Below the pieces are notes generated by a model that saw only the letters and a list, made by a program, of their open reading frames with translations, had not been told where the DNA came from and made no database searches. This document shows positions 8,680 to 54,400 of a DNA stretch of 64,000 bases, one piece after another. Origin of the DNA: Octopus sinensis. Taxonomy: Eukaryota. The DNA lies in assembly GCF_006345805.1 (NCBI RefSeq), contig NC_043009.1, positions 60,946,001-61,010,000 of the forward strand, given 5' to 3'. Position 1 is the first letter of the stretch. Each line of letters starts with the position of its first letter. Both the position numbers and the translations under genes were made by a program.

Positions 8680-8895
8680 GTATTACTCATAAAATACAGT
8701 GTACATTTAAACACATACGAGAAATCCACTCATGGGACTCCTCATGCTAGAAAGAACAGCTAGGTTCCAAAACCACAAAATTAGGGATAAAATCCCGAAA
8801 GGTTTCGGAACCTAGCTGCTCTTTCTAGCATGATGAATCCCCTGAGTGGATTCCTCTTATGTGTTTAAATGTACACTGTATTTTATGAGTAATAC
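8680..8895. repeat. Fold-back element of about 215 bp beside (TA)n
   Basis: GTATTACTCATAAAATACAGTGTACATTTAAACACATA... is mirrored at 8858-8895. The central loop contains the hairpin GGGAT/ATCCC. Confidence 0.9.
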
Positions 8896-9199
8896 ATAGT
8901 CTTTGGAGCAAAATTTTACACGCTGGGCCACTGGAAGTGAAAATTTCTATCAATTTCCATTTCCCTTCGATATGATGATGTATATAAATATATATATGTA
9001 TGTGTTATTATATGTATTACATATGCATTATATATATGTGTGTGTGTGTGTGCTGTTTATAGTGAGTTGTACGGTGATGAGTGCTGTGTGTGGCATATTG
9101 TAGAAGGATGAAGTGTCATAATGATTGCTGTGAATAAGAAGTGTGTCTCATGACTCTTGTTTGTAGCATGTTGCGGTTGGTTTGGTGTACTTCCTTCTG

Positions 9200-9227
9200 G
9201 GGTTGAATTTGATGTGTGTGTGTGTGT

Positions 9228-9266
<39 letters not shown>

Positions 9267-10072
9267 AATGTGTGTGTGTGAGTGAGAGAGTGTGCAATGT
9301 GTGTAGTTACGTGTCGGTATGTGTATACGTGTGTAGTTATGTGTATTTGTGAGTGCATGTGCGTGTAGGTACGTGTTCGTGTGTGTTTGCATATGTGTCG
9401 GTATGTATGTGTGTGTGTGTTTGTGTATGTGTGTGTGCGCATGTGCAATGTGTGTAGTTATATGTCAGCATGTGTGTAATTATGAGTGTTTGTGCAGGTA
9501 TGTGCTTGTATGCGTATGTGTGCAATGTGTAGGTATGTGTTTGTGTGTGTGTTTGCATGCATGTGTGTGTTTGTGCGTGCGTGTGTGTGTGTGTGTGTGC
9601 AATATGTGTATTAATGCATGTATTTATGTGTGAAAATTAGTGTGTTTCTACTCATTTGTATGCGTGTGTGTGTGTGTGTGTATGACATGAACTACTAACA
9701 CACACACACACACACACACAGAACTACAGTGGGAGGTGAGGAGGAGGGGTAAGAGTAGGAAACAATTTAATGCCAGATTGATGTACTGGTTGTAGTAGTG
9801 GTAGTGGTGCTGATGCAGGCAATGGTGCTAGTGGCAAAGGTTATTGTAGTGCTGGCGACAGAAGAGGTGGTTGTAGTGTAAGCAGCAACAGCAGTAGTAG
9901 TAGTAGTGCTGTTGATGTAGCCAGCAGCAGTGGTAGTAGTAATAGTAGTAGTTGAAATGTCGTAGGTGGTGATATATGTTGTAGTAGTAGTGGTAGTGGT
10001 GGTAGTAGTAACAGCCACAGTAGTAATAGTAGTAGTAGTGGTTGTGGTGGTGGTGATGGTAGTAGTAGTGGC

Positions 10073-13701: not shown

Positions 13702-16549
13702 CAGGGGTCTCCAAAGTTTTCCAGCGGAGGGCCACATTGCTGAATTTTTAAAGCTACGGGGGCCAAGGTTCTAAATTATTTATTTTACCAAAATAATATA
13801 AATAAATAGTGAATTAATAATTAAAAAAGGTTATTTATTCAGTACATAATCACAATGTATATAATATCAGTAACAATTAACATGTTTTTTTTAACTTTGA
13901 TCAATAGGGGAAACATGAAATTGTTTCATTTCTGACAAAATTTTGTCCAACTGAGGTTCAAAATGAGTGGTTCCAATAACAAGCAATGCATTTAAATGTT
14001 CATCAGACAATTGTGATCTGTAGCAGGATTTTGTGTATTTCATCTTTGAAAAAGTCTTCTCACACAAATATGTGGTGCCAAAAACTGAAATGAATTCACA
14101 GGCAAACCTCCTTAAATGAAGAAATTGGTCGGATGGAAGGCATTTGTAGAATTCAATCAAATTTCCCTCTTTATATTTGTCCTTCAGGATGTCATTGGAT
14201 TGCAAATCAATAACTTCCATTTGTAACTCAGAAGGTAAGTCTCCAATAACAGAGTTAAATGGATTTTCAAAAATTCTTAGTTTTGAAGAACATGCATCAA
14301 GATCAGAAAAACGTTCTTCAAACTGTTGTTTCAAAGCTAAAATGACATCTTGAGCAAACAAGTTTGGAAATGGAGTGGCAGCTTCCTGTCTATATTTGTC
14401 ACATCGTGAAAAATGAGTAAAGCAGCTTCTTGTTAACTGACTTTCAAATAGTATTAATTTCTTACGAAAAGCTTTCACCTTTGAGTACAAATCACAGATG
14501 AGTGAAGTTTCACCTTGTATCCGTAGGTTGAAATGCATAGTTAAATCGGCTGAAAATGCTAATTTCCAGAGCCATTCACTGTCTTTGAGCAACACCTGTG
14601 AATGGTTTTTCTCATTTAAAAATATTTCAATTTCAGTTCGAAGCTCAAAAAATCTAGCCAGAATTTTTCCATAGCTAAGCCATCTTACTGAAGTATAGTA
14701 AGGTAGGTCTGGAAACTCAGCATTCATTTCCTCCAAGAAATCACGAAATTGGCGATGTTTGAGTCCATGAGATCTTATGTAGTTAACAGTGGAAATCACA
14801 GGATCTAATACAGATGATAAATCAAGATGCTTTCCACACAGTGCTTGCTGATGAAGAATACAATGCAATACCAAAGGTTTCAATCCACCGGAATTCTCAA
14901 TTACTTTGTTAATTTGCCCAACTAAGCCCTTTTTGGTTCCACACATATTTCTGCCACCATCTGTTGTTATGCATTTTAGTTTTTTCCATTCCAAATTATA
15001 CTCAGCCACTGACTTTTCCACTTCTCTAAAAATATCTATGCCTGTTGTTGTTCCATGCATGCTGTGCACAGATACAAGTTCCTCAGTAATCTCAAAATTG
15101 GCATTTATTCCTCTGATGAACAATAACAATTGGGATGTGTCTGATACATCAATTGACTCATCAAGTGCAACAGAAAAGCATACAAACTTGCTGGCTTTGT
15201 CTTTTAGCTGTGATTTAATATTTCTTTCAATATGTTCAACCCTACGAGCAACAGTGTTCGCAGAAAGACTAATTGCGGAAAATAAATCTACGTTTTCTGG
15301 ACACATTTCCTTAGCTACCTCATTCAAGCACTTTTTAATAAGTTCACCATCTGTAAATGGCTTACCTTTCTTCGCCAAAAGGTTAGCAACATGGAAGCTT
15401 GCTCTTGTTGCTCTCTCTTTTTCTACAGCCTTCTTCTTGAAAACAAACTGCATTGATGATAAATTCTTCTTTAATTTGTCAAATTTCTCTTTACGTAGCT
15501 GTCCAATGAATTGGTAGTACTGTGATGAATGCTTTTTTTCATAATGTCTCTGAATGTTGTACTCTTTAAGTACTGCAATTGTGTCGGTGCATATAACGCA
15601 TAGTGCCTTGTTGTTTGACTCTATGACAAAATAGTCTATGTTCCATTGTTCCTTAAAAACTCTACACTCAGAGTCGATTTTTCGTTTTCTTCATTGAGCT
15701 AACATTTTTACCATGGGTCGACAGATTTTGCTTGACGATATATGTAAAAGGACGAAACAAGTAAAAACAATATTCACAGGTCACTCGATACGTGCATTCA
15801 CTTCGGCAGCGACGACGACAAATGACTCACACTTGTGCACAACGAAAACGCCAAGTCTGTGCTGACTGACGGAATGCGCATCGAACTTTACTCCATGCTG
15901 ATTGGCGACTGCACCAGGATTAGAAACCACCACACAACGTCAGGCTCAACCCTCTCTATTCATCGCTCGTGAGATGTAGGTAACATCGATAAATCGATAT
16001 TTGTCTTCTTTTATTATACTAGGCACGGGACTTTTATTAACGTCATACTTGTCGTATCTGCTCTCTCGACAGTTGACGGAATAGGTTGACTTTTCTGCGA
16101 CATCAATAAAGCTAGAAATTGAATCTCTGCTTCATTGTAAGCAGCACCATCCATCTCACTGACAATCGCCTATTATCTAAGATGAATGATAGGTAGCTCC
16201 ATAGCGAAGTTAATTCATTTTATGGTGGTTCTGATGGGTCAGTTAAAACGGGGGGAGTGGAAAAGAACCTATATTTACACTAAAGTTTAGTGTATAAATT
16301 TTTAATTCGCCGGCGCAATTTAAAGACATTAATTGATGGCAAATCAATTAGCGTCGTCTTGCGTCTATTTGCTGTACTATATTTGTCAAACGTATTAAAA
16401 GGGGTGTAAAGTATATTTGTTTTTGTATGATTTCGGCAAGGCTTGTTTTTCGACATTTGTTTTATAATTTTGGAGGACAGCTCGGCGGGCCGGATTAAAA
16501 ACCTTGGCGGGCCGAATCCGGCCCGCGGGCCGTACTTTGGAGACCCCTG
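13702..16549 (-). mobile_element. Full-length hAT DNA transposon (Buster/Charlie group, SPIN/OC1/GTF2IRD2-like), 2848 bp
   Basis: Perfect 16-bp TIRs CAGGGGTCTCCAAAGT (13702-13717 and 16534-16549) and a perfect 8-bp TSD GTCCAAAT (13694-13701 and 16550-16557). It is inserted into the 3' tail of a SINE. Confidence 0.96.
13891..15714 (-). pseudogene. hAT transposase, about 607 codons, with one lesion near the N-terminus
   Basis: ATG at 15714 and an in-frame TGA at 15693-15691, then an open frame to 13891. It contains a BED finger (C-VIC...HYEKKH), ALDES, TTDGG, HCILH, RWLS and CEKTFS, so the DDE triad and CxxH are intact. LTMHFNLRIQG suggests a short in-frame deletion. Confidence 0.9.
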
Positions 16550-37360: not shown

Positions 37361-38670
37361 TTTATTTATCTATGCGTTTCAGCGAAGTGGCTGCGGTCAT
37401 GCTGGAGCAGCACCACCATGACTTTCCCTCCTTATGCTGTACTCTCTGCTCATTCCTTGCATGGCTCTTCTCCACCACCTGATGTAGTCCAATCAAGACT
37501 TTCGATGGCACATCTGGTTTATAAGAGAATTTGACATCACTGTCTTAAACTGTGTCTCATTTCGAGCCATCGGTTCGTCTGGTATCGTGGATAGGAAAGT
37601 GTCGAGTTTTGTTTTGAAAACCTCTACATCCATGTCTTGCAGGTCTCTCAATTGTTTTGGCAGGGCATTAAAGAACTGAGGTCCTCTGAAACTGAGGCTG
37701 TTGCAGTACCTTGCTCTTATGTGAGATGCAGTGGACGGTACCCTTGGTACTATGCAGTGGCGACCTGTGCAGGCATTCGTGTAGTACTTGATGCCAAAGT
37801 TTGGTACCAGTCCTTCCAGTATTTTCCATATGTAAATTAATACATATCTCTCCCGCCTGCGCTCCATTGAGTAGAGACTTAGTGCCTTTAGTCGCTCCCT
37901 GTACTTCATCTGCTGTTCTGTGGCGATCTTTTTTGTATAGTGACACTGAATTGCCTCGAGTTCTGCTGTCAGCTTGACACTGTCTGGTGACCACAACTGA
38001 GAGCTATAGTCTAGGTGGCTCAAAACAAATGTCTTCCATAGAGTGAACATGACTTTTTCGATCCCTTGTTCTGAATGTCTTCAGTATCCCCCCTGCCAGT
38101 TGTCTGTACTTTGCTGTCAACTTGACAATGTGCATGTGAAATGATGCATCACTACGCATGCTGATGCCCAGGTCTCTCACTGTTTGTGGTTCTGGGATTG
38201 TAGAACCTCCAGGTCCTGTGTATGCCAGTTGGGGGGGGGGGGGGCACTTGTGGCCTTGTAGCGCAGTACTTGAAATTTTTTATCATTGAACCGCATATTA
38301 TTTTGCTCTGCCCACTTGTATATTGCATTTAAGTCATTCTGCAGGCTTATGGCATCGTCAGGATTCTTTATTGCCTGAGATAGTTTTGTGTCATCAACAT
38401 AGCTAGTGATAATGGCTATCCGAGTGAACGTGGGCATGTCCAGAAGGGCTACTATGAACAGTAGTGGACCCAGGACAGTTCCTTGTGGAACACCGCTCAA
38501 TATTTGCGTTTCCCTAGATAATTCTCCACTGGCTGCAACTGTCTGACGTCCACCATCCAGGAAGTCATGCAGCCACTCTCCTAATTTACCAGCTATGCCA
38601 AGGTTTCGCAGCTTGTGACATATCATGCCATGATCAATTTTGTCAAAGTCCAAACTCTGTTGGACTTTAC
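37361..38670 (-). mobile_element. 5'-truncated CR1/L2-group LINE (RT domain plus 3' UTR)
   Basis: LDFDKIDHG, SGVPQGTVLGPLLF, SYVDDTK and LQNDLNAIYKWA (38177-38674), then a frameshift at a G14 run. It continues TLWKTFVLSHLDYSSQLWSP...NALP (37493-38050), and the 3' tail ends in (TAAA)n. Confidence 0.92.
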
Positions 38671-38832
38671 ACATAAGGTATTGGAATCTTACATATATAC
38701 CATTCTGCCTAAAAAAATGGATCTACAACTTCAATATCCCTAAATATCTTGCATCTATTTTCTTTCCTCCACCTCACTCTCTATTTTGTATCACATCTAA
38801 ACTAACTATGACTTAACCATCCTCTCACACCA

Positions 38833-46396: not shown

Positions 46397-47996
46397 GACT
46401 ATCCAACCACATTATACCTATTTCTTTACTATCCACAAGGGGCTAAACACAGAGAAGACAAACGGATTAAGTCGATTACATCGACCCCAATGTGTAACTG
46501 GTACTTAATTCATCGACCCCGAAAAGATGAAAGGCAAAGTCAACCTTGGCGGAATTTGAACTCAGAATGTAACGGCAGACGAAATACGGCTACGCATTTT
46601 GCCTGGCATGCTAACATTTCTGCCAGCTAGCCACCCTATATCTTTCTCCTGTTCTCCTCACCCTAGCATCCCTATCATCTTCGCTACTCCTGTTGCTTGC
46701 AGACCCCACTCTTCTCCATCCCTCTACCCATGATTCCTGTTTCATCCACCCTTCAACCCAAACCGTTTCGACAGTCTGCCTCCCCGCCTTTCATTCACTT
46801 TCCATGCAATCTTGCAAACCATCCACTTCTACACAGCTTCTGCTTTGAGGGACTCCCTAAGCCCCTTATCTCCGTTATCTATATCTTGCAGCGCCTACTA
46901 ATTATTTTCTCATTCTTCCTGTTTTCCCTTACTAGACATGAACAGCTATGCACATCCCTCCGCAGGAAATGCTCTGCATACACCCCCGCCTCTCATAGTA
47001 ATCCCCTCGTTCCCTAGCATGAAGTTGAACCCCACCCCCCGCATCTTCTACTTCTTTACTACCCACAGAGAGGACAAACGGATTAAGTCGATTATATCGA
47101 CTCCAGTGCATAACAGGTACTTATTTAATCGGCCCCGAAAGGATGAAGGGTAAAGTCAACCTCGGTGGAATTTGAACTCAGAACGTAGCGGCAGATGAAA
47201 TACCTATTTCTTTATTACCTGCAAGGGGCTAAACACAGAGAGGACAAACAAAAGGATTAAGTCGATTATATCGACTCCAGGTACTTATTTAATCGACCCC
47301 GAAAGGATGAAGGGCAAAGTCAACCCCGGTGGAATTTGAACTCAGAACGTAGCGGCAGATGAAATACTGATGCTAAGCATCTTCTCCAGGGCTTGTAGAC
47401 CTGCGAACTGCATGACAACCTCAATAATGCAGGTGGGATGAAAAAAATTACCTTGTCTGTGTTGTAAAGCGATGCACATTAGGAAGGGCATCCAGCCGTA
47501 AAAGCCAAGCCAAAGCAGTCGCTGGAGCACGATGCAAACCCCTGAGACACATCAGATCCTGTCAAACTGTCCAACCCATGCCAGCATGGAAAGTGGACGT
47601 TCAATGATGTTTTTTTTTATATATATTCTTTTATTTGTTTCAGTCCTTTGACTGCAGCCATGCTGGAGCACCGCCTTTAGTTGAACAAATCGACTCCAGG
47701 ACTTATTCTTTGTAAGCCTAGTACTTATACTATCGGTTCTTTTTGCCGAACAGCTAAGTTACAAGGACATAAACACAGCAACATCGGTGTCAAGCAATGA
47801 TGGGGGGAACAAAGACACACACACATATATATGCGACGGGCTTCTTTCAGTTTCCGTCTACCAAATCCACTCACAAGGCTTTGGTCGGCCCGAGGCTATA
47901 GTAGAAGACACTAGCCCAAGGTGCCACGCAGTGGGACTGAACCCGGAACTATGTGGTTGGAAAGCAAGCTTCTTACCATATAGCCACCCTGCCTTA

Positions 47997-48420
<424 letters not shown>

Positions 48421-48773
48421 CAAATTTATATCTACATACACGTCTATGTATGTATATATACATGTATGTGCGTGTGTTCGTACACTTGTACATATGCCAT
48501 GCTTTTATTTGCTAGAACACATCCTTAGTGAATCGATATGATTCTCTAGGGAGATAAATGTTAATGCATGACATTCTATATCCTTTCTGATGGTGGCCAT
48601 CCATCTGAGGTAGATTCACAATTTGATCGATCCAAATAGCTATCTGGCCTTGGCTACGAAATGCGAAACTCGTCACAAAAAGAATTGCAGTATGTGGTTT
48701 CATAATTATGCATTGGATCATACATACACACAAACACACCCACATAGTTGTCGCAAATAAATTTTTATTATAC

Positions 48774-49778
48774 CTTGTCAAGTTGTGCAGCTACCACGTG
48801 GACTTCGTAATCTGAAGTGTGTAGAATAGGCGAGTAACATTCATAACCCTTGTATAGAGTGGTCAGACTAGAAAAACTGGTTTCTGGCTGAGGAATGTTG
48901 AAACACCTCAAAAGCTTCCCGTTGTGAACTTCCATCAGATATCTTTCCTCTGTAAATACAAACATTCGAACCTGTAATGTATCGGCCCACTCGTTCGATC
49001 CTTGCTGTTTAGCTTTAATAGACATTGAACAGTGAGTAATAAAAAGGTGTTGAATGGTCGCTGAATGGGCCAAAGGTAAGATTCGAGAAATGTCGATGGT
49101 TTGAAATGAATTAAAGCTTTGATTGAACATCACACCGAAATATTCTGATTTCTTTCTGTTTTTGTGTTTGTCGAAAACATGACCGATTATAAGTGACATG
49201 TTAATTAAATCATAACAACAAAGTAATTTAAAGTTGTTATAAGAACGTTCTGGGTATAACAAACGATCCAGGCGGACTGTTTTCAACTCTAGCTCGTAAC
49301 TCGCATCGGACGAAAGAGCAAGCTGTAGTTGGGAGTCTGAAATCCACATTAAACTAGGCCCATCCACAAGCTGTACATTCTCACACATCGATTTGATCTT
49401 AGATGTGACAGCCAATTCAGGTTGTTTAGTGTCAATAACATAACGTCTTAACGGAAGCAGTTTATCAGAGCAGTAAGACACGATAATAAAAGTCACTTGT
49501 TGCTCTCCTAAGCACTGCAAAAATGCACACGTAATAGTTTTACCCGTAGAGATCTCTTTAATGTTTTCTGCGCTAATTATCGTCCATTCTCCGATGGAAG
49601 GTAAGGATAAATTACAAAGACTATGTCTCGATAATGACAACTGTTGGCAGTTGCTAGAAGTGGATTTGCAGTATTCAAAACGATAAGTTTCATCGTTTAA
49701 ATTAGAAATAAATGTATCAATGGTAAAATTATGGATAATTCCCTCTTCTGAAGCAACGATATTTTGACAGGAAGTCAT
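48774..49778 (-). CDS. FANCB: FANCB coding exon 1 (335 codons, N-terminal beta-propeller region)
   Basis: The first in-frame ATG (49778) gives MTSCQ (human MTSKQ). Motifs match remembered human FANCB: VQLVDGPSLMW vs LRVLNGPLILW, ILPLAHSATIQHL vs IIPPAYSSVVTYV, FVFTEERYLMEVHNG vs IALTRKNQLISFQNG. The exon ends at a phase-0 donor AAG|GTATAA. The track ORF start at 49853 is a TTG. Confidence 0.88.
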
Positions 49779-49983
49779 CGAAATGATATTAGAATAAATA
49801 AAGAACGAATTATGATGCACAACGAGTGAAGGCGAATGAAAAGTGTCGCACAATTAGGACAATCTGAATTTTGCGCGTAAATTCACGTTACCGGATGTAA
49901 GGGGAGATAATTGCTGGAGAGTGACTAGTATGAAGATAAAAAAGGTCGCAGCGCTTTTTTATTCCTGAAATTAGTGATCAGAA
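49779..49983. promoter_or_regulatory. Compact bidirectional promoter between FANCB and the 14-3-3 gene
   Basis: 205 bp lie between divergent ATGs. The region is CpG-rich relative to the window and has an ETS/GABP-like ACCGGATGT (49890-49898) and an E2F-like TTTTGCGCGTAA (about 49869-49880). This assumes neither gene has a distant 5' non-coding exon. Confidence 0.65.
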
Positions 49984-50769
49984 ATGGCGGACAGGGAGGA
50001 ACTAGTTTATATGGCCAAACTGGCTGAACAAGCTGAAAGGTACGACGAAATGGTGAGCAATATGAAAAGCGTTGCGAACCAAGGTACAGAGCTGTCGGTA
50101 GAAGAACGTAACCTTTTGTCTGTTGCTTATAAAAATGTTATAGGAGCTCGGCGGGCCTCTTGGCGAATCATAAGTAGCTTGGAGCAAAAGGAAGATTCGA
50201 AAGGCAACGAACAACGTCTCCGTTTGATTCGCAGTTACCGGGAAAATATTGAAATTGAACTGAAGAAAATCTGCGAGGATGTTCTCGATGTTCTCGACAA
50301 ACAATTGCTGCCAATAGCCAGTTCTGGAGAGTCGAATGTATTTTACTTTAAAATGAAAGGCGATTATCATCGTTATCTGGCGGAATTCGCAATTGGTGAT
50401 GACAGAAAAGAGACTGCCGATGAAAGTCTGAAAGCTTACAAACGTGCTAGCGATATTGCTTCAAACGAGCTCACCTCTACGCATCCGATCCGACTTGGTT
50501 TGGCGCTCAATTTCTCCGTGTTCTACTATGAAACTCTTAGTAACCCCATGAGAGCCTGCGCCTTGGCTAAAACCGCCTTCGATGAAGCTATTGCTGAGCT
50601 GGACACACTCAGCGAAGAAAGCTACAAAGATTCCACGCTCATCATGCAGCTCCTTCGGGATAATCTCACCTTGTGGACATCGGACATGCAGACCGAGGAA
50701 TGTGACCAGAAGGCTGACCCGAAAGGGGAACAGCCACAGGATGGAGGAGATCCTGCGCCAGAAGCTTAA
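49984..50769 (+). CDS. YWHAE: 14-3-3 protein, epsilon-type; single uninterrupted 261-aa ORF
   Basis: Hallmark motifs are present: [63 protein letters not shown] and [36 protein letters not shown] and DYHRY point to the epsilon rather than the zeta group. The symbol denotes the subfamily, not proven 1:1 orthology. Confidence 0.96.
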
Positions 50770-51448
50770 TGGAAAAAAAAAAAAAAAAAAAAGAAATTTG
50801 TCGTAAAGTTTCTTTCGTTGATAAGAAAAAAAAAAGAAAGAAAAAAACGAAACAGCTTTATAAGAACAGCAACAGCCAAGGTCCCCCTTACTACTACTAC
50901 TACTACGATAACTACTACTAGTAGTCTACTTTGAACTAATTATATACATACACACACAGACACTCACATATATATATACACACATTAAGTAGTAGTCTAG
51001 CTGTTTCTTCTCTTTCCTCATTACATCTCTTTAAACATCTTTCTTTCTCTACTATGTCTGTCTGTCTCTGTCTCTCTCTGTCCCTTGCTGCTGCTGGGGC
51101 TGTACCTTCTATACCCCACTTTACACCGTAAAATAGTCGGCTGTTGCAGCAGTAAACCGAGCAGAAACAGTAACAAAACAACAACAACACAAAATATCAG
51201 AGAAAAGAAGACAAAAAAAAAAAAAATTTGAAAAAAAGTCAAAGGAAAAAAAAAACAAACAAAAAACAACAAAAAAAAAAAACAATTCAATTTCCAGAAA
51301 GAAGAAGAAAACGCAAGGATCAATGTAGTCTCGTCTTTGAAACATAATTTCATCATTTATCTTTCTCTTCTCTGTCATATATCTATATATATATGTGTCT
51401 CTATATATATATATATAAATCTTTTTTGCTGTATTGTTTCTGTATTGA

Positions 51449-51479
<31 letters not shown>

Positions 51480-54400
51480 TATATATATATATACATATAT
51501 ATATATATAATATTATCGGTATAAAAGTGACCAAACTACCTAGTTGTGTCTGCCGTTCATCATTTCCTCTTTTCATTTCCAACATAACCTCACACACACA
51601 CACAGACACACACACACAATCAGAGTAATGTCCTCCTCTTCATATCTTTGCTACCATTCATTTTCATTTGATTTTTATTGAATGTCAAATTTAAGTCGTG
51701 ATTACTATGATACTACTACTACTAGCAGCAACAATGATGATAATAATAATGATAATTAATAAGGTGTCTTCTTAATAGCCACAAGGACGTCGTCGACTGA
51801 GGGACAATTTTTTACAAGGCAGGACAAAGATTTGCTGGTAGACACTTATTATACTCTACTCTACTCAGACCTAAAACTGAATTAAATAGAATTTTTCAAA
51901 CAATAATTGTTTAACGATTCTTAAATATTTCTAAGACAACGGTAAGGATCGATAATTTAGTTTGTTACAACAATTGTTCAAGAAAAATTAATTTAAATAA
52001 TTGAATATTTTCTAGTGCTTTAGACTTTATTACTTGCATAAAAATGGTCTTTTCAACCCGTATTTTATTTGTAATTTTTTTTTTCTCTTATTAACTAAGC
52101 CACTTTTTTTTACTTCAGATTGACAATTATAAGGTGAGAATTTGTATATTTTTTTTTTGTTTTGTTTGTTTGTTTGTTTAATTAAAGCTAATAAGGAGAG
52201 GAGGGGGTCAAAAAGGGCGTGGCAAGATCTTAGGATTAATTTTTTTTTATTTAATTCAATTGAAGGGAGAAATTGTCTTGTTAATTTGTCTTATTGTTTA
52301 TAATTCTGTTGAGAAATACGCTCAAAAAAAATTATTTATTATGAAGATAGGATTTTCAGGCTCCTGTGCCGCCCACACCATGTGAAGCAACACCACATAA
52401 TGAATGTGTATGCATGCAATCCGAATGATAGAGGCCTTACTTATATTCATATATAATATGTGTAATAAGCATTATTTATACAAAGTATATATTACATATG
52501 TTGAATTACTTAATTTAAAAGCGATCATTTTTCTTTTAATTAAATGTTTCGCTCAGTGCGTTATTATATATAGATATAGATATATAATGGATAGGTGTTG
52601 ATCTTGCTTAGTGTGTGTGTGTGTGTGTGTGCGTGTGTTGATTGTAGTAGCAAATCCAGCGAGATATGTTGAGTAGAGATGTTATTTTAATTAATGCTGC
52701 CGCCACTCTAGTCATCATCGTCACCACCATCACCTGTGGGATTTTTGTTTTCCCTCGCTAGTAGTAATACTAGTATTGTAGCAGCAGTAGTATTCAAATC
52801 TGCTACTACTGCTGGTAATACTATTCAGTGATGTGAGGATAATTTAGCATTTAAGTATGTATATGTGTGTGTGCGTGTATATATGTGTATGTACATATAT
52901 ATAGTGGCCATTTTTACGATTACCCGTCTTTTTTCTTAATTGTGCGGTCATTCTATTGGAAATTACAAAATGTATTCCTCTTCCTCACATATATTGGAAT
53001 TATAATGATCGTCTTAACGATCTTTTTCCTCGACCATTTCTTTCTTCCTTCCCCCCGCCACTATTTTTGGATTTATTCATGGAAATCCACACACACATAT
53101 ATATATGTATGTATGTATAATAATGTGTGTGTGTGATAATGATAGTATATTTCCTCCTTTAGTCCGCCCCCCCCCCTTCTCTGTTGGTCATTTTTCCTCG
53201 CTCGGAAATTACAGTAAAGCAAAGCAACACGTGATGATGATGATGATGATTACGCTGATGATGATGATGAGTAATAGCTACCACCACCGTTAATTGATAA
53301 CACACGATGATGGTGTATTCGAGCACGAGATCAATTATTATTGGAGAGTAGGGTGGTGATGGGTGATATATATATACATGTATATATATTAGTCTCTTAA
53401 ATGGACCTCAATACATAACTGATAATTTATTAAGCCTCCGGTCGGATGACAGTTGTCCGTTTGGAAATCAAGAAAGACGTAGATATAGATAGGACCGAAA
53501 TAACATTGTTCGTCCTGCGATGTCTCGTATTAATAGCTTTTAACTACGATAATTATAATTTCCAAGAGCTCGGTTACAGGTGGGAAGAATAAGATTTTGT
53601 GACGTTTATTCTTTGTTTAAAGGCTGTTAATAGTGCACGTGAAGTGATAGTTTTTCGGCCAAGAATAGAACTTGGTCGTTGTGGCGGTTTTTCTGCGGCT
53701 CATTTTCCCCTCACAATACCGCATTGATTCGAGATTTAACCTAGTGAATAAATAATTCGCTTATTTTTTTAGAGACGATTCCAAGTATCTAACGAGAGAT
53801 GGACTAAATCCAAGCTTTGGGAGATTCTAAATAGCAATTAGAAATTCCAAAGAAATAAGGTGCAGCCTTCTGCTGAGAATTAGTAATTAGGTTTTCGTTG
53901 TCGCTCTAAACTACATCGCTGCAGCAGAGAAAGAAGGCAAGAACTAACCCCATTTGTTTAAAAAAAGAATCTCAAGTCCCCGTTACCCTTTTTTTTTTTA
54001 CTAGTGCTACTTTTAATAAACGATTTCTTTTGACTAGGTGAGGTAACTGGTTTTTTTATAATTTTTTTTATATGTAGTGGGAGTGGATATATTTCATTGG
54101 AACAACCATCTTTTAACACTGGTATCATCGTCATTATCGAATAGAGAAAGAGAAAAAAAATTAGGCAAGGTCGATTTCGATGGAATTTGAACTCTAAAAA
54201 TGTAATAATGCCTTCTTTATTTACCAGGCACAAAGGCTTCTGTTCTGGGGTGGGGACAGCGAATGCGTCGGACTTCTGAACGCACGCGCAACAAGTAAAA
54301 CGAGCAGAAATGAATTTAGAATTGAATAATAATTAGGAAACCGTCTATGTGGTCCTCTCGATCGGCTAGAAATACTAGCTAAATGGACCTCAAAAACACA

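Follow-up and report, generated by a model that had tools for sequence, protein, structure and literature searches.

FANCB and an intronless 14-3-3 epsilon paralogue lie head-to-head in Octopus sinensis across a partly conserved interval that is probably a shared bidirectional promoter

The window analyzed here is a 64,000-nucleotide stretch of the Octopus sinensis genome (NCBI RefSeq assembly GCF_006345805.1, contig NC_043009.1, forward-strand positions 60,946,001 to 61,010,000), and all coordinates count from its first letter. It carries two divergent genes, one for the Fanconi anemia protein FANCB and one for an intronless 14-3-3 protein. Their start codons (FANCB ATG at 49778 on the minus strand, 14-3-3 ATG at 49984 on the plus strand) leave 205 bp between them (49779-49983, Table 1). 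An earlier sequence-only reading of this DNA had placed the two ATGs and the gap at exactly these positions, as reading the letters and the list of open reading frames (ORFs) over 48500-51100 confirmed, and had named both genes, identities that Pfam hits and orthologue matches bear out. It had also described the 14-3-3 copy as intronless in a genome with introns of up to 12 kb. The copy indeed has an uninterrupted coding sequence where canonical epsilon is multi-exon, and FANCB intron 1 spans ~12.1 kb, with the next exon at ~36663. Over aligned segments of at least 1 kb, the window and O. vulgaris OX597826.1 share 94-98% identity, with many small indels, and the 205-bp interval is identical at 205/205 positions. 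The CpG observed/expected ratio is 1.73 in the interval and 0.52 across the window.

Table 1. Features of the FANCB/14-3-3 locus in the window.
Feature	Position	Strand	Details
FANCB coding exon 1	48776..49778	-	1,003 nt; ORF from first ATG 49778 to GT donor 48775-48774
Further FANCB coding exons	36663-36478, 33788-33696, 32384-32253, 30360-30220, 28424-28035, 26923-26675	-	approximate tblastn limits
Head-to-head interval	49779..49983	none	between both start codons, 205 bp
Conserved 117-bp block	49867..49983	none	14-3-3-proximal half of interval
E2F-like near-palindrome TTTTGCGCGTAAA	49869..49881	none	inside invariant AATTTTGCGCGTAAATT (49867-49883)
ETS-like site CCGGATGT	49891..49898	+	GGAW core
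Conserved GGGGAGATAAT with GATA-like AGATAA	49901..49911	+	just 3' of ETS-like site
Intronless 14-3-3 epsilon-type coding sequence	49984..50769	+	261 residues, stop included; uninterrupted ORF
14-3-3 3' untranslated region, minimum extent	50770..51568	+	alignment with Argonauta and Sepia

The minus-strand gene is, judged by its protein matches, the FANCB orthologue. Exon 1 corresponds to the first 334 residues of an 863-residue O. vulgaris protein (P0172, named 'Fanconi anemia group B protein' in UniRef), from which it differs by a few residues. It is 87% identical to octopod P0001, 64% to Argonauta FANCB (P0122) and 32-38% to decapodiform FANCB (P0123 and P0124). The exon ends at a canonical GT donor (...GACAAG/GTATAA), and its end position matches in Sepia cDNA. 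Precomputed Pfam hits to FANCB_N (PF28327) and FANCB_middle (PF28312) are present in the full-length proteins of O. vulgaris (FANCB_N weak), Argonauta and Sepia-type decapodiforms. Vertebrate FANCB has a large first coding exon and a length of ~860 residues; here exon 1 measures 1,003 nt and the orthologues have 863 residues in O. vulgaris, 871 in Argonauta and 854 in decapodiforms, a range of 854-871.

Exon 1 taken by itself is less easily recognized. A Pfam scan of it returned no FANCB family even at E up to 1, and PDB sequences gave only chance matches, by phmmer or with a cephalopod FANCB profile. The AlphaFold2 model of exon 1, built from a 5-sequence alignment, is all-beta and of low confidence (predicted local distance difference test score 46). 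A Foldseek search with this low-confidence model placed four chains of human Fanconi core-complex entries at the top (chains O, O, b and B of 7KZP, 7KZQ and 9A0J; E 4e-6 to 2e-4, template-modelling score ~0.24; chain molecules not named). These hits lend the FANCB identity weak support, and the model suggests that exon 1 may encode an N-terminal all-beta domain.

The plus-strand gene matches the Pfam family 14-3-3 (PF00244) over its full length (profile positions 1-223/223, E 3e-104, 347.7 bits against a cut-off of 33.2). Residues K50, R57, R130 and Y131 in epsilon numbering, which we take to be the phosphopeptide-binding residues, are all kept in the translation (...AYK50NVIGARR57... and ...DYHR130Y131LAEF...). 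The protein is identical to P0171 and differs by one residue (S160 rather than A) from O. vulgaris P0003, '14-3-3 protein epsilon isoform X2'. Named animal matches are nearly all 14-3-3 epsilon, the exceptions including the Argonauta orthologue, which is named 'artA-like'. From these matches the copy is assigned to the epsilon type. It is 90% identical to its Argonauta orthologue, 80% to the Sepia orthologue and 75-78% to canonical cephalopod epsilon, from which its C-terminal tail is distinct.

The copy is under strong purifying selection. The ratio of nonsynonymous to synonymous substitution rates (dN/dS) is 0.19 for Octopus versus Argonauta and 0.04-0.07 for octopods versus decapodiforms, values that argue against a pseudogene. 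The Sepia protein (P0140) is listed in 57 collection blocks, mostly short contigs, and those examined include polyadenylated RNA-derived contigs with an AATAAA signal. The 3' untranslated region (UTR) is conserved as well. Argonauta aligns continuously at 71% identity over 50787-51568, and three islands (50887-50943, 51297-51358 and 51505-51557) have 77-80% identity with cuttlefish in the same order. Their retention at saturated divergence suggests post-transcriptional regulatory elements. The Sepia 3' UTR has 656 nt and ends with AATAAA plus poly(A); the Octopus one probably ends a few hundred bases beyond 51568, with an ATTAAA at 51881.

Other coleoids have the same head-to-head pair. The gap is 205 bp in O. 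vulgaris and 206 bp in Argonauta hians, and the pair recurs in an octopod Logan read-assembly contig (L001). Among decapodiforms it is found in an ENA contig (L004, 195-bp gap) and in five Sepia-type genomic contigs (L012, L013, L015, L016 and L021, gaps of 185-203 bp). In Sepia pharaonis (L020; GCA_903632075.3, CAHIKZ030002384.1), a cDNA contig (L008) is colinear with the genome at 98.1% identity through FANCB exon 1, the gap, the 14-3-3 coding sequence and the whole 3' UTR. In this genomic contig FANCB exon 1 lies at 8791-9797, head-to-head with an annotated YWHAE-like gene, and is itself uncalled in the assembly annotation.

Octopus, Argonauta and Sepia-type decapodiforms all have the pair, which is therefore older than the octopod/decapodiform split, dated to ~270-300 million years ago. 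The survey of the pairing covers coleoids, with the FANCB loci of Nautilus and other molluscs outside the comparison. The sequence-only reading had proposed a lineage-specific pairing. A recent or octopus-only origin does not stand, given the pair in Argonauta and Sepia-type decapodiforms; the pairing may nonetheless be specific to cephalopods, as the 14-3-3 tree and the neighbors of the Solemya epsilon gene suggest (see below). An exhaustive phmmer search of exon 1 against 1.84 billion representatives gave four matches, all cephalopod. A profile search with the cephalopod FANCB alignment gave three, all octopod, and no Nautilus, gastropod or bivalve FANCB. We found no paper in the literature on a cephalopod 14-3-3 retrogene or on this pair.

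Conservation of the interval is confined to its 14-3-3-proximal half. Identity over the 117-bp block is 89-94% among octopods and 74-77% between octopus and decapodiforms, while at fourfold-degenerate sites it is 44-53% (proportion of synonymous differences ~0.7, saturated). The alignment of the block scores 53, against -26 +/- 5.4 for shuffled sequences, and 0/2000 shuffles reach 53. Over the FANCB-side 88 bp, the alignment of octopus with cuttlefish is no better than that of shuffled sequence.

The block holds several candidate regulatory motifs. One E2F-like and one ETS-like motif lie between the ATGs, as the sequence-only reading had described. AATTTTGCGCGTAAATT, which contains the E2F-like near-palindrome, is invariant in every octopod and decapodiform genomic sequence aligned; TTTTGCGCGTAAA is one mismatch away from TTTSGCGC, which we take as the E2F consensus. 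The ETS-like site reads CCGGATGT in octopods, CCGGAAGC in the ENA decapodiform contig and CAGGAAGC in Sepia, and its GGA(A/T) core is always kept. The pattern TTTKGCGCG occurs once in 64 kb against 0.19 expected, and CCGGAWGY twice in the window against 2.4 expected, which is chance frequency. Window motif counts were dropped as evidence for this reason and conservation was used instead; it is conservation across species, not the count, that sets the motifs above chance. Further invariant or near-invariant elements of the block run from TTTATTCC to AGTGATCAGAAATG. Conservation peaks directly upstream of the 14-3-3 ATG, where AGTGATCAGAAATG is invariant. The GATA-like element within GGGGAGATAAT does not figure in the sequence-only reading. 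GGGGAGATAAT shows no change across the six genomic sequences compared or in the JGI transcript L032, but has diverged in the transcripts of the species represented by P0141.

Transcript evidence comes from decapodiform relatives, in which contig ends approximate the start sites only. Sepia-type RNA contigs that carry FANCB only have leaders of 93 and 111 nt, colinear with the genome, with their 5' ends in the E2F-like/ETS-like core. Contigs from two other decapodiform sources that carry 14-3-3 only have leaders of 73-115 nt and start at the ETS-like site or ~20 nt upstream of it. For L032, colinearity of the leader with the genomic block is clear; in the P0141 species, for which no genomic sequence was compared, clear alignment of the leaders is confined to the ~45 nt preceding the ATG. 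The gap is bridged in at least six RNA-derived contigs, drawn from two run series, in which a spliced FANCB ORF of 854 codons is joined to the 14-3-3 mRNA, as would be expected if the 5' ends of the two transcripts overlap. Both mRNAs were assembled from the same RNA runs, which, like the conserved motifs where the 5' ends meet, speaks indirectly for shared cis-elements and co-expression. The Sepia 14-3-3 mRNA is wholly unspliced, its UTRs included, and is colinear with the genome.

In these decapodiform relatives, the two start sites appear to meet or overlap at the conserved core. Because they do, the 14-3-3 leader is at once the proximal upstream region of FANCB, and this double role may explain the constraint on that half of the interval. 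The sequence-only reading had named a distant non-coding first exon of either gene as a finding that would speak against its proposal. Neither gene needs one in the decapodiform relatives, where the 5' ends lie inside the gap. A head-to-head pair is understood here as one with start sites less than 1 kb apart; the octopus ATGs are 205 bp apart and the decapodiform 5' ends fall within the homologous gap. From the conserved sequence, we infer that this use of start sites is carried over to Octopus.

The 14-3-3 copy stands apart from the canonical epsilon gene. The latter extends over 21.7 kb in Argonauta and over 26 kb in the bivalve Solemya and has at least 4-5 coding exons, with at least three intron gaps resolved in Argonauta and four in Solemya. 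In the two species, the boundaries of its first, second and last coding exons are found at identical residues. In Argonauta it lies on another contig than the FANCB-adjacent copy, which has none of the introns of this multi-exon parent. The Argonauta annotation has no called gene in the 10 kb to either side of canonical epsilon, and that of Solemya none in the 10 kb upstream of it. Its sole called neighbor, ~8 kb downstream in Solemya, is an FtsJ/Spb1 gene and not FANCB.

A neighbor-joining tree with 500 bootstraps groups the cephalopod epsilon-type proteins in one clade (100%). The FANCB-adjacent copies of octopods and decapodiforms form a clade within it (72%), sister to the canonical clade (84%). 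This topology places the duplication in the cephalopod stem, after the divergence from the non-cephalopods sampled and before the octopod/decapodiform split. The dating is tentative because the sampling comprised one non-cephalopod mollusc, no Nautilus and no zeta-type outgroup.

Retroposition of a 14-3-3 epsilon mRNA is the most likely origin of the copy, since all canonical coding introns are gone at once and the mRNA is wholly unspliced. An A20 run at 50775-50794 was considered as the poly(A) tail of a retrocopy and rejected: it is A6 in Argonauta, is absent in Sepia, and lies within the conserved 3' UTR. Loss of the hallmarks of retroposition is expected after so long a time, and target-site duplications are not expected to survive to the present.

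Comparable arrangements are known in mammals. Human FANCB (Xp22.2) neighbors MOSPD2, as the sequence-only reading had stated, and its promoter overlaps MOSPD2 and was, in human cells, alone among the Fanconi core-complex promoters in showing activity in both orientations (PMC3149625). E2F sites are predicted in the Fanconi core-complex promoters (PMC3149625). Human FANCB is also listed among repair and cancer genes that have bidirectional promoters, and ETS-family sites are reported for each of the ten genes listed (PMC1853124). The human and cephalopod loci are alike in that FANCB diverges from its neighbor across a short promoter. They differ in the partner, which is MOSPD2 in human and an intronless 14-3-3 duplicate in cephalopods, and in the cephalopod start sites, which appear to abut or overlap. 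Sequence homology between the two promoters is neither shown nor expected.

In a mammalian survey, retrocopies placed head-to-head with an older gene, at a distance of less than 2 kb, are co-expressed with that gene and apparently use its bidirectional promoter (PMC4772013). The cephalopod pair resembles them as an intron-free duplicate head-to-head with an older protein-coding gene within 2 kb. In the mammalian cases expression appears to come from the shared proximal promoter, as the 5' ends in decapodiform relatives suggest for the cephalopod pair too. Unlike them, the cephalopod pair has stayed together from a time preceding the octopod/decapodiform split, its spacer deeply conserved, and the only sign of its retroposition is the absence of introns. 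With canonical 14-3-3 epsilon (YWHAE), the copy shares family, subtype, 75-78% of its residues and the phosphopeptide-binding positions. The canonical gene, in contrast, is split into at least 4-5 coding exons across 20-26 kb and does not lie beside FANCB, while the copy is single-exon, encodes a distinct C-terminal tail and has its own conserved UTRs. By analogy, the cephalopod pair fits both precedents; what differs is the partner and the unusually long time for which the pair has been retained.

We consider it probable that FANCB and a cephalopod-specific intronless 14-3-3 epsilon paralogue, retroposed in the cephalopod stem, share a compact bidirectional promoter. A 14-3-3 epsilon mRNA would have been retroposed beside the FANCB start before octopods and decapodiforms split, and the copy would have been retained as a functional gene since. 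Divergent transcription would proceed from abutting or overlapping start sites within the ~200-bp spacer, positioned around the conserved E2F-like/ETS-like core (49867-49911). The 14-3-3 5' leader would thereby also be the upstream promoter of FANCB. We infer that the 117-bp block combines the functions of shared core promoter, 14-3-3 5' leader and FANCB upstream promoter. E2F and ETS factors may act on the candidate motifs, and the two genes may be co-regulated, for example with the cell cycle. It is plausible, as the sequence-only reading had proposed, that the FANCB promoter gave the 14-3-3 copy its expression; the half of the spacer that is conserved adjoins the 14-3-3 side.

Several points weigh against this explanation. 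No octopod RNA contig with the exact octopus proteins is on record, only genome contigs. The gap-joined contigs could stem in part from pre-mRNA or DNA reads, and the E2F-like site, one mismatch off its consensus, is a candidate site. Bootstrap support for the FANCB-adjacent clade is moderate (72%) and comes from a tree with a single non-cephalopod mollusc. No surviving hallmark of retroposition was identified. A comparison meant to map the boundaries of the insert gave no 5' or 3' UTR homology between the copy and the canonical locus, only microsatellites and chance matches of 12 nt; no search was made for target-site duplications, the insert having no mapped boundaries.

A more elaborate version of the shared promoter can be imagined, which we regard as quite unlikely. 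Here the retrocopy inserted ~100 bp upstream of the FANCB start and replaced the proximal promoter of that gene, so that the copy's leader with its E2F-like, ETS-like and GATA-like elements became the FANCB upstream promoter. The two genes would then form an obligate unit with overlapping start sites, unseparated in the coleoid lineages sampled, and the copy would be a dedicated cell-cycle-regulated 14-3-3 acting with the Fanconi core complex or the checkpoint machinery.

The genes could instead be adjacent without shared regulation, each with its own minimal promoter, and the 117-bp block could be kept as the 14-3-3 5' leader for translational or stability control. We hold this to be unlikely, if still deserving of attention. 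The conserved block falls in its entirety between the ATG and the apparent 5' ends of 14-3-3 and would be transcribed leader; its strongest conservation, around the invariant AGTGATCAGAAATG, is directly upstream of that ATG; the 14-3-3 3' UTR is conserved too, suggesting post-transcriptional constraint; and the FANCB-side half of the interval is unconserved. However, FANCB transcripts begin inside the block, which makes it necessarily the proximal upstream region of FANCB, and the invariant E2F-like and ETS-like elements are typical of the promoters of Fanconi and other repair genes (PMC3149625, PMC1853124). A leader role and a promoter role are also not mutually exclusive. That Octopus differs from cuttlefish, with a distant non-coding exon for one or both genes or with a barely expressed 14-3-3 copy, so that the interval is not a working promoter, is very improbable. 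It would account for the lack of any RNA contig with the exact octopus 14-3-3 or FANCB protein when the Sepia protein is found in 57 blocks, RNA-derived ones included. A look-up by exact protein would nevertheless miss fragmented or polymorphic transcripts, and octopods keep the block at 89-94% identity, every motif being intact. Purifying selection also acts within octopods, as the Octopus-Argonauta dN/dS of 0.19 indicates.

The origin of the copy allows for another account, in which DNA-level duplication, or an older locus, lost its introns secondarily and no retroposition took place. It fits the absence of a poly(A) relic and of parental UTR homology (target-site duplications not having been searched for), as well as the long conserved UTRs that the copy has of its own. 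We judge it decidedly unlikely. Every coding intron seen in the canonical gene (at least three in Argonauta and four in Solemya) is missing at the same time, and the copy's mRNA is unspliced even in its UTRs. The canonical first, second and last coding-exon boundaries are stable from bivalve to cephalopod, and the loss of retroposition hallmarks is expected after what we take to be 270 million years or more.

The locus thus offers ~117 bp of non-coding sequence, kept from octopus to cuttlefish and carrying candidate E2F, ETS and GATA sites, as a core promoter candidate. It could serve as a compact bidirectional promoter in cephalopod reporter and transgenesis work. The pair also suggests that a duplicate gene can remain tied to the two-way promoter of a DNA-repair gene for an estimated several hundred million years, and it draws attention to a cephalopod-specific 14-3-3 epsilon paralogue under strong constraint. 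For annotation, it mends a gap in the Sepia pharaonis assembly, where FANCB exon 1 is present and uncalled beside 14-3-3. The pair by itself is no demonstration of a functional link between 14-3-3 and the Fanconi pathway.

The remainder of FANCB extends leftward through the window. Its later exons were placed by searching the window with Argonauta P0122 and O. vulgaris P0172 as tblastn queries. Exons for residues 729-863 of P0172, the last 135 codons, were not found anywhere in the window (1-26674 included), so either the following intron exceeds 26 kb or the gene leaves the left edge of the window. Intron 1 contains a ~600-bp AT-rich microsatellite tract just downstream of exon 1 (47900-48520; TATA/CATA-type repeats, GC ~0.12-0.26), which yields long spurious 'YIYIYI' ORFs on both strands. 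A 165-residue ORF in the same intron (38180-38674, minus strand) matches the reverse transcriptase family RVT_1 (E 1e-14) and is, on this match, a retroelement fragment. Downstream of the last visible FANCB exon, a 520-residue ORF (13894-15453, minus strand) contains the dimerisation domain of hAT-family transposases (Pfam E 1e-6) and weakly matches DUF4371, which marks it as a hAT transposon relic or copy.

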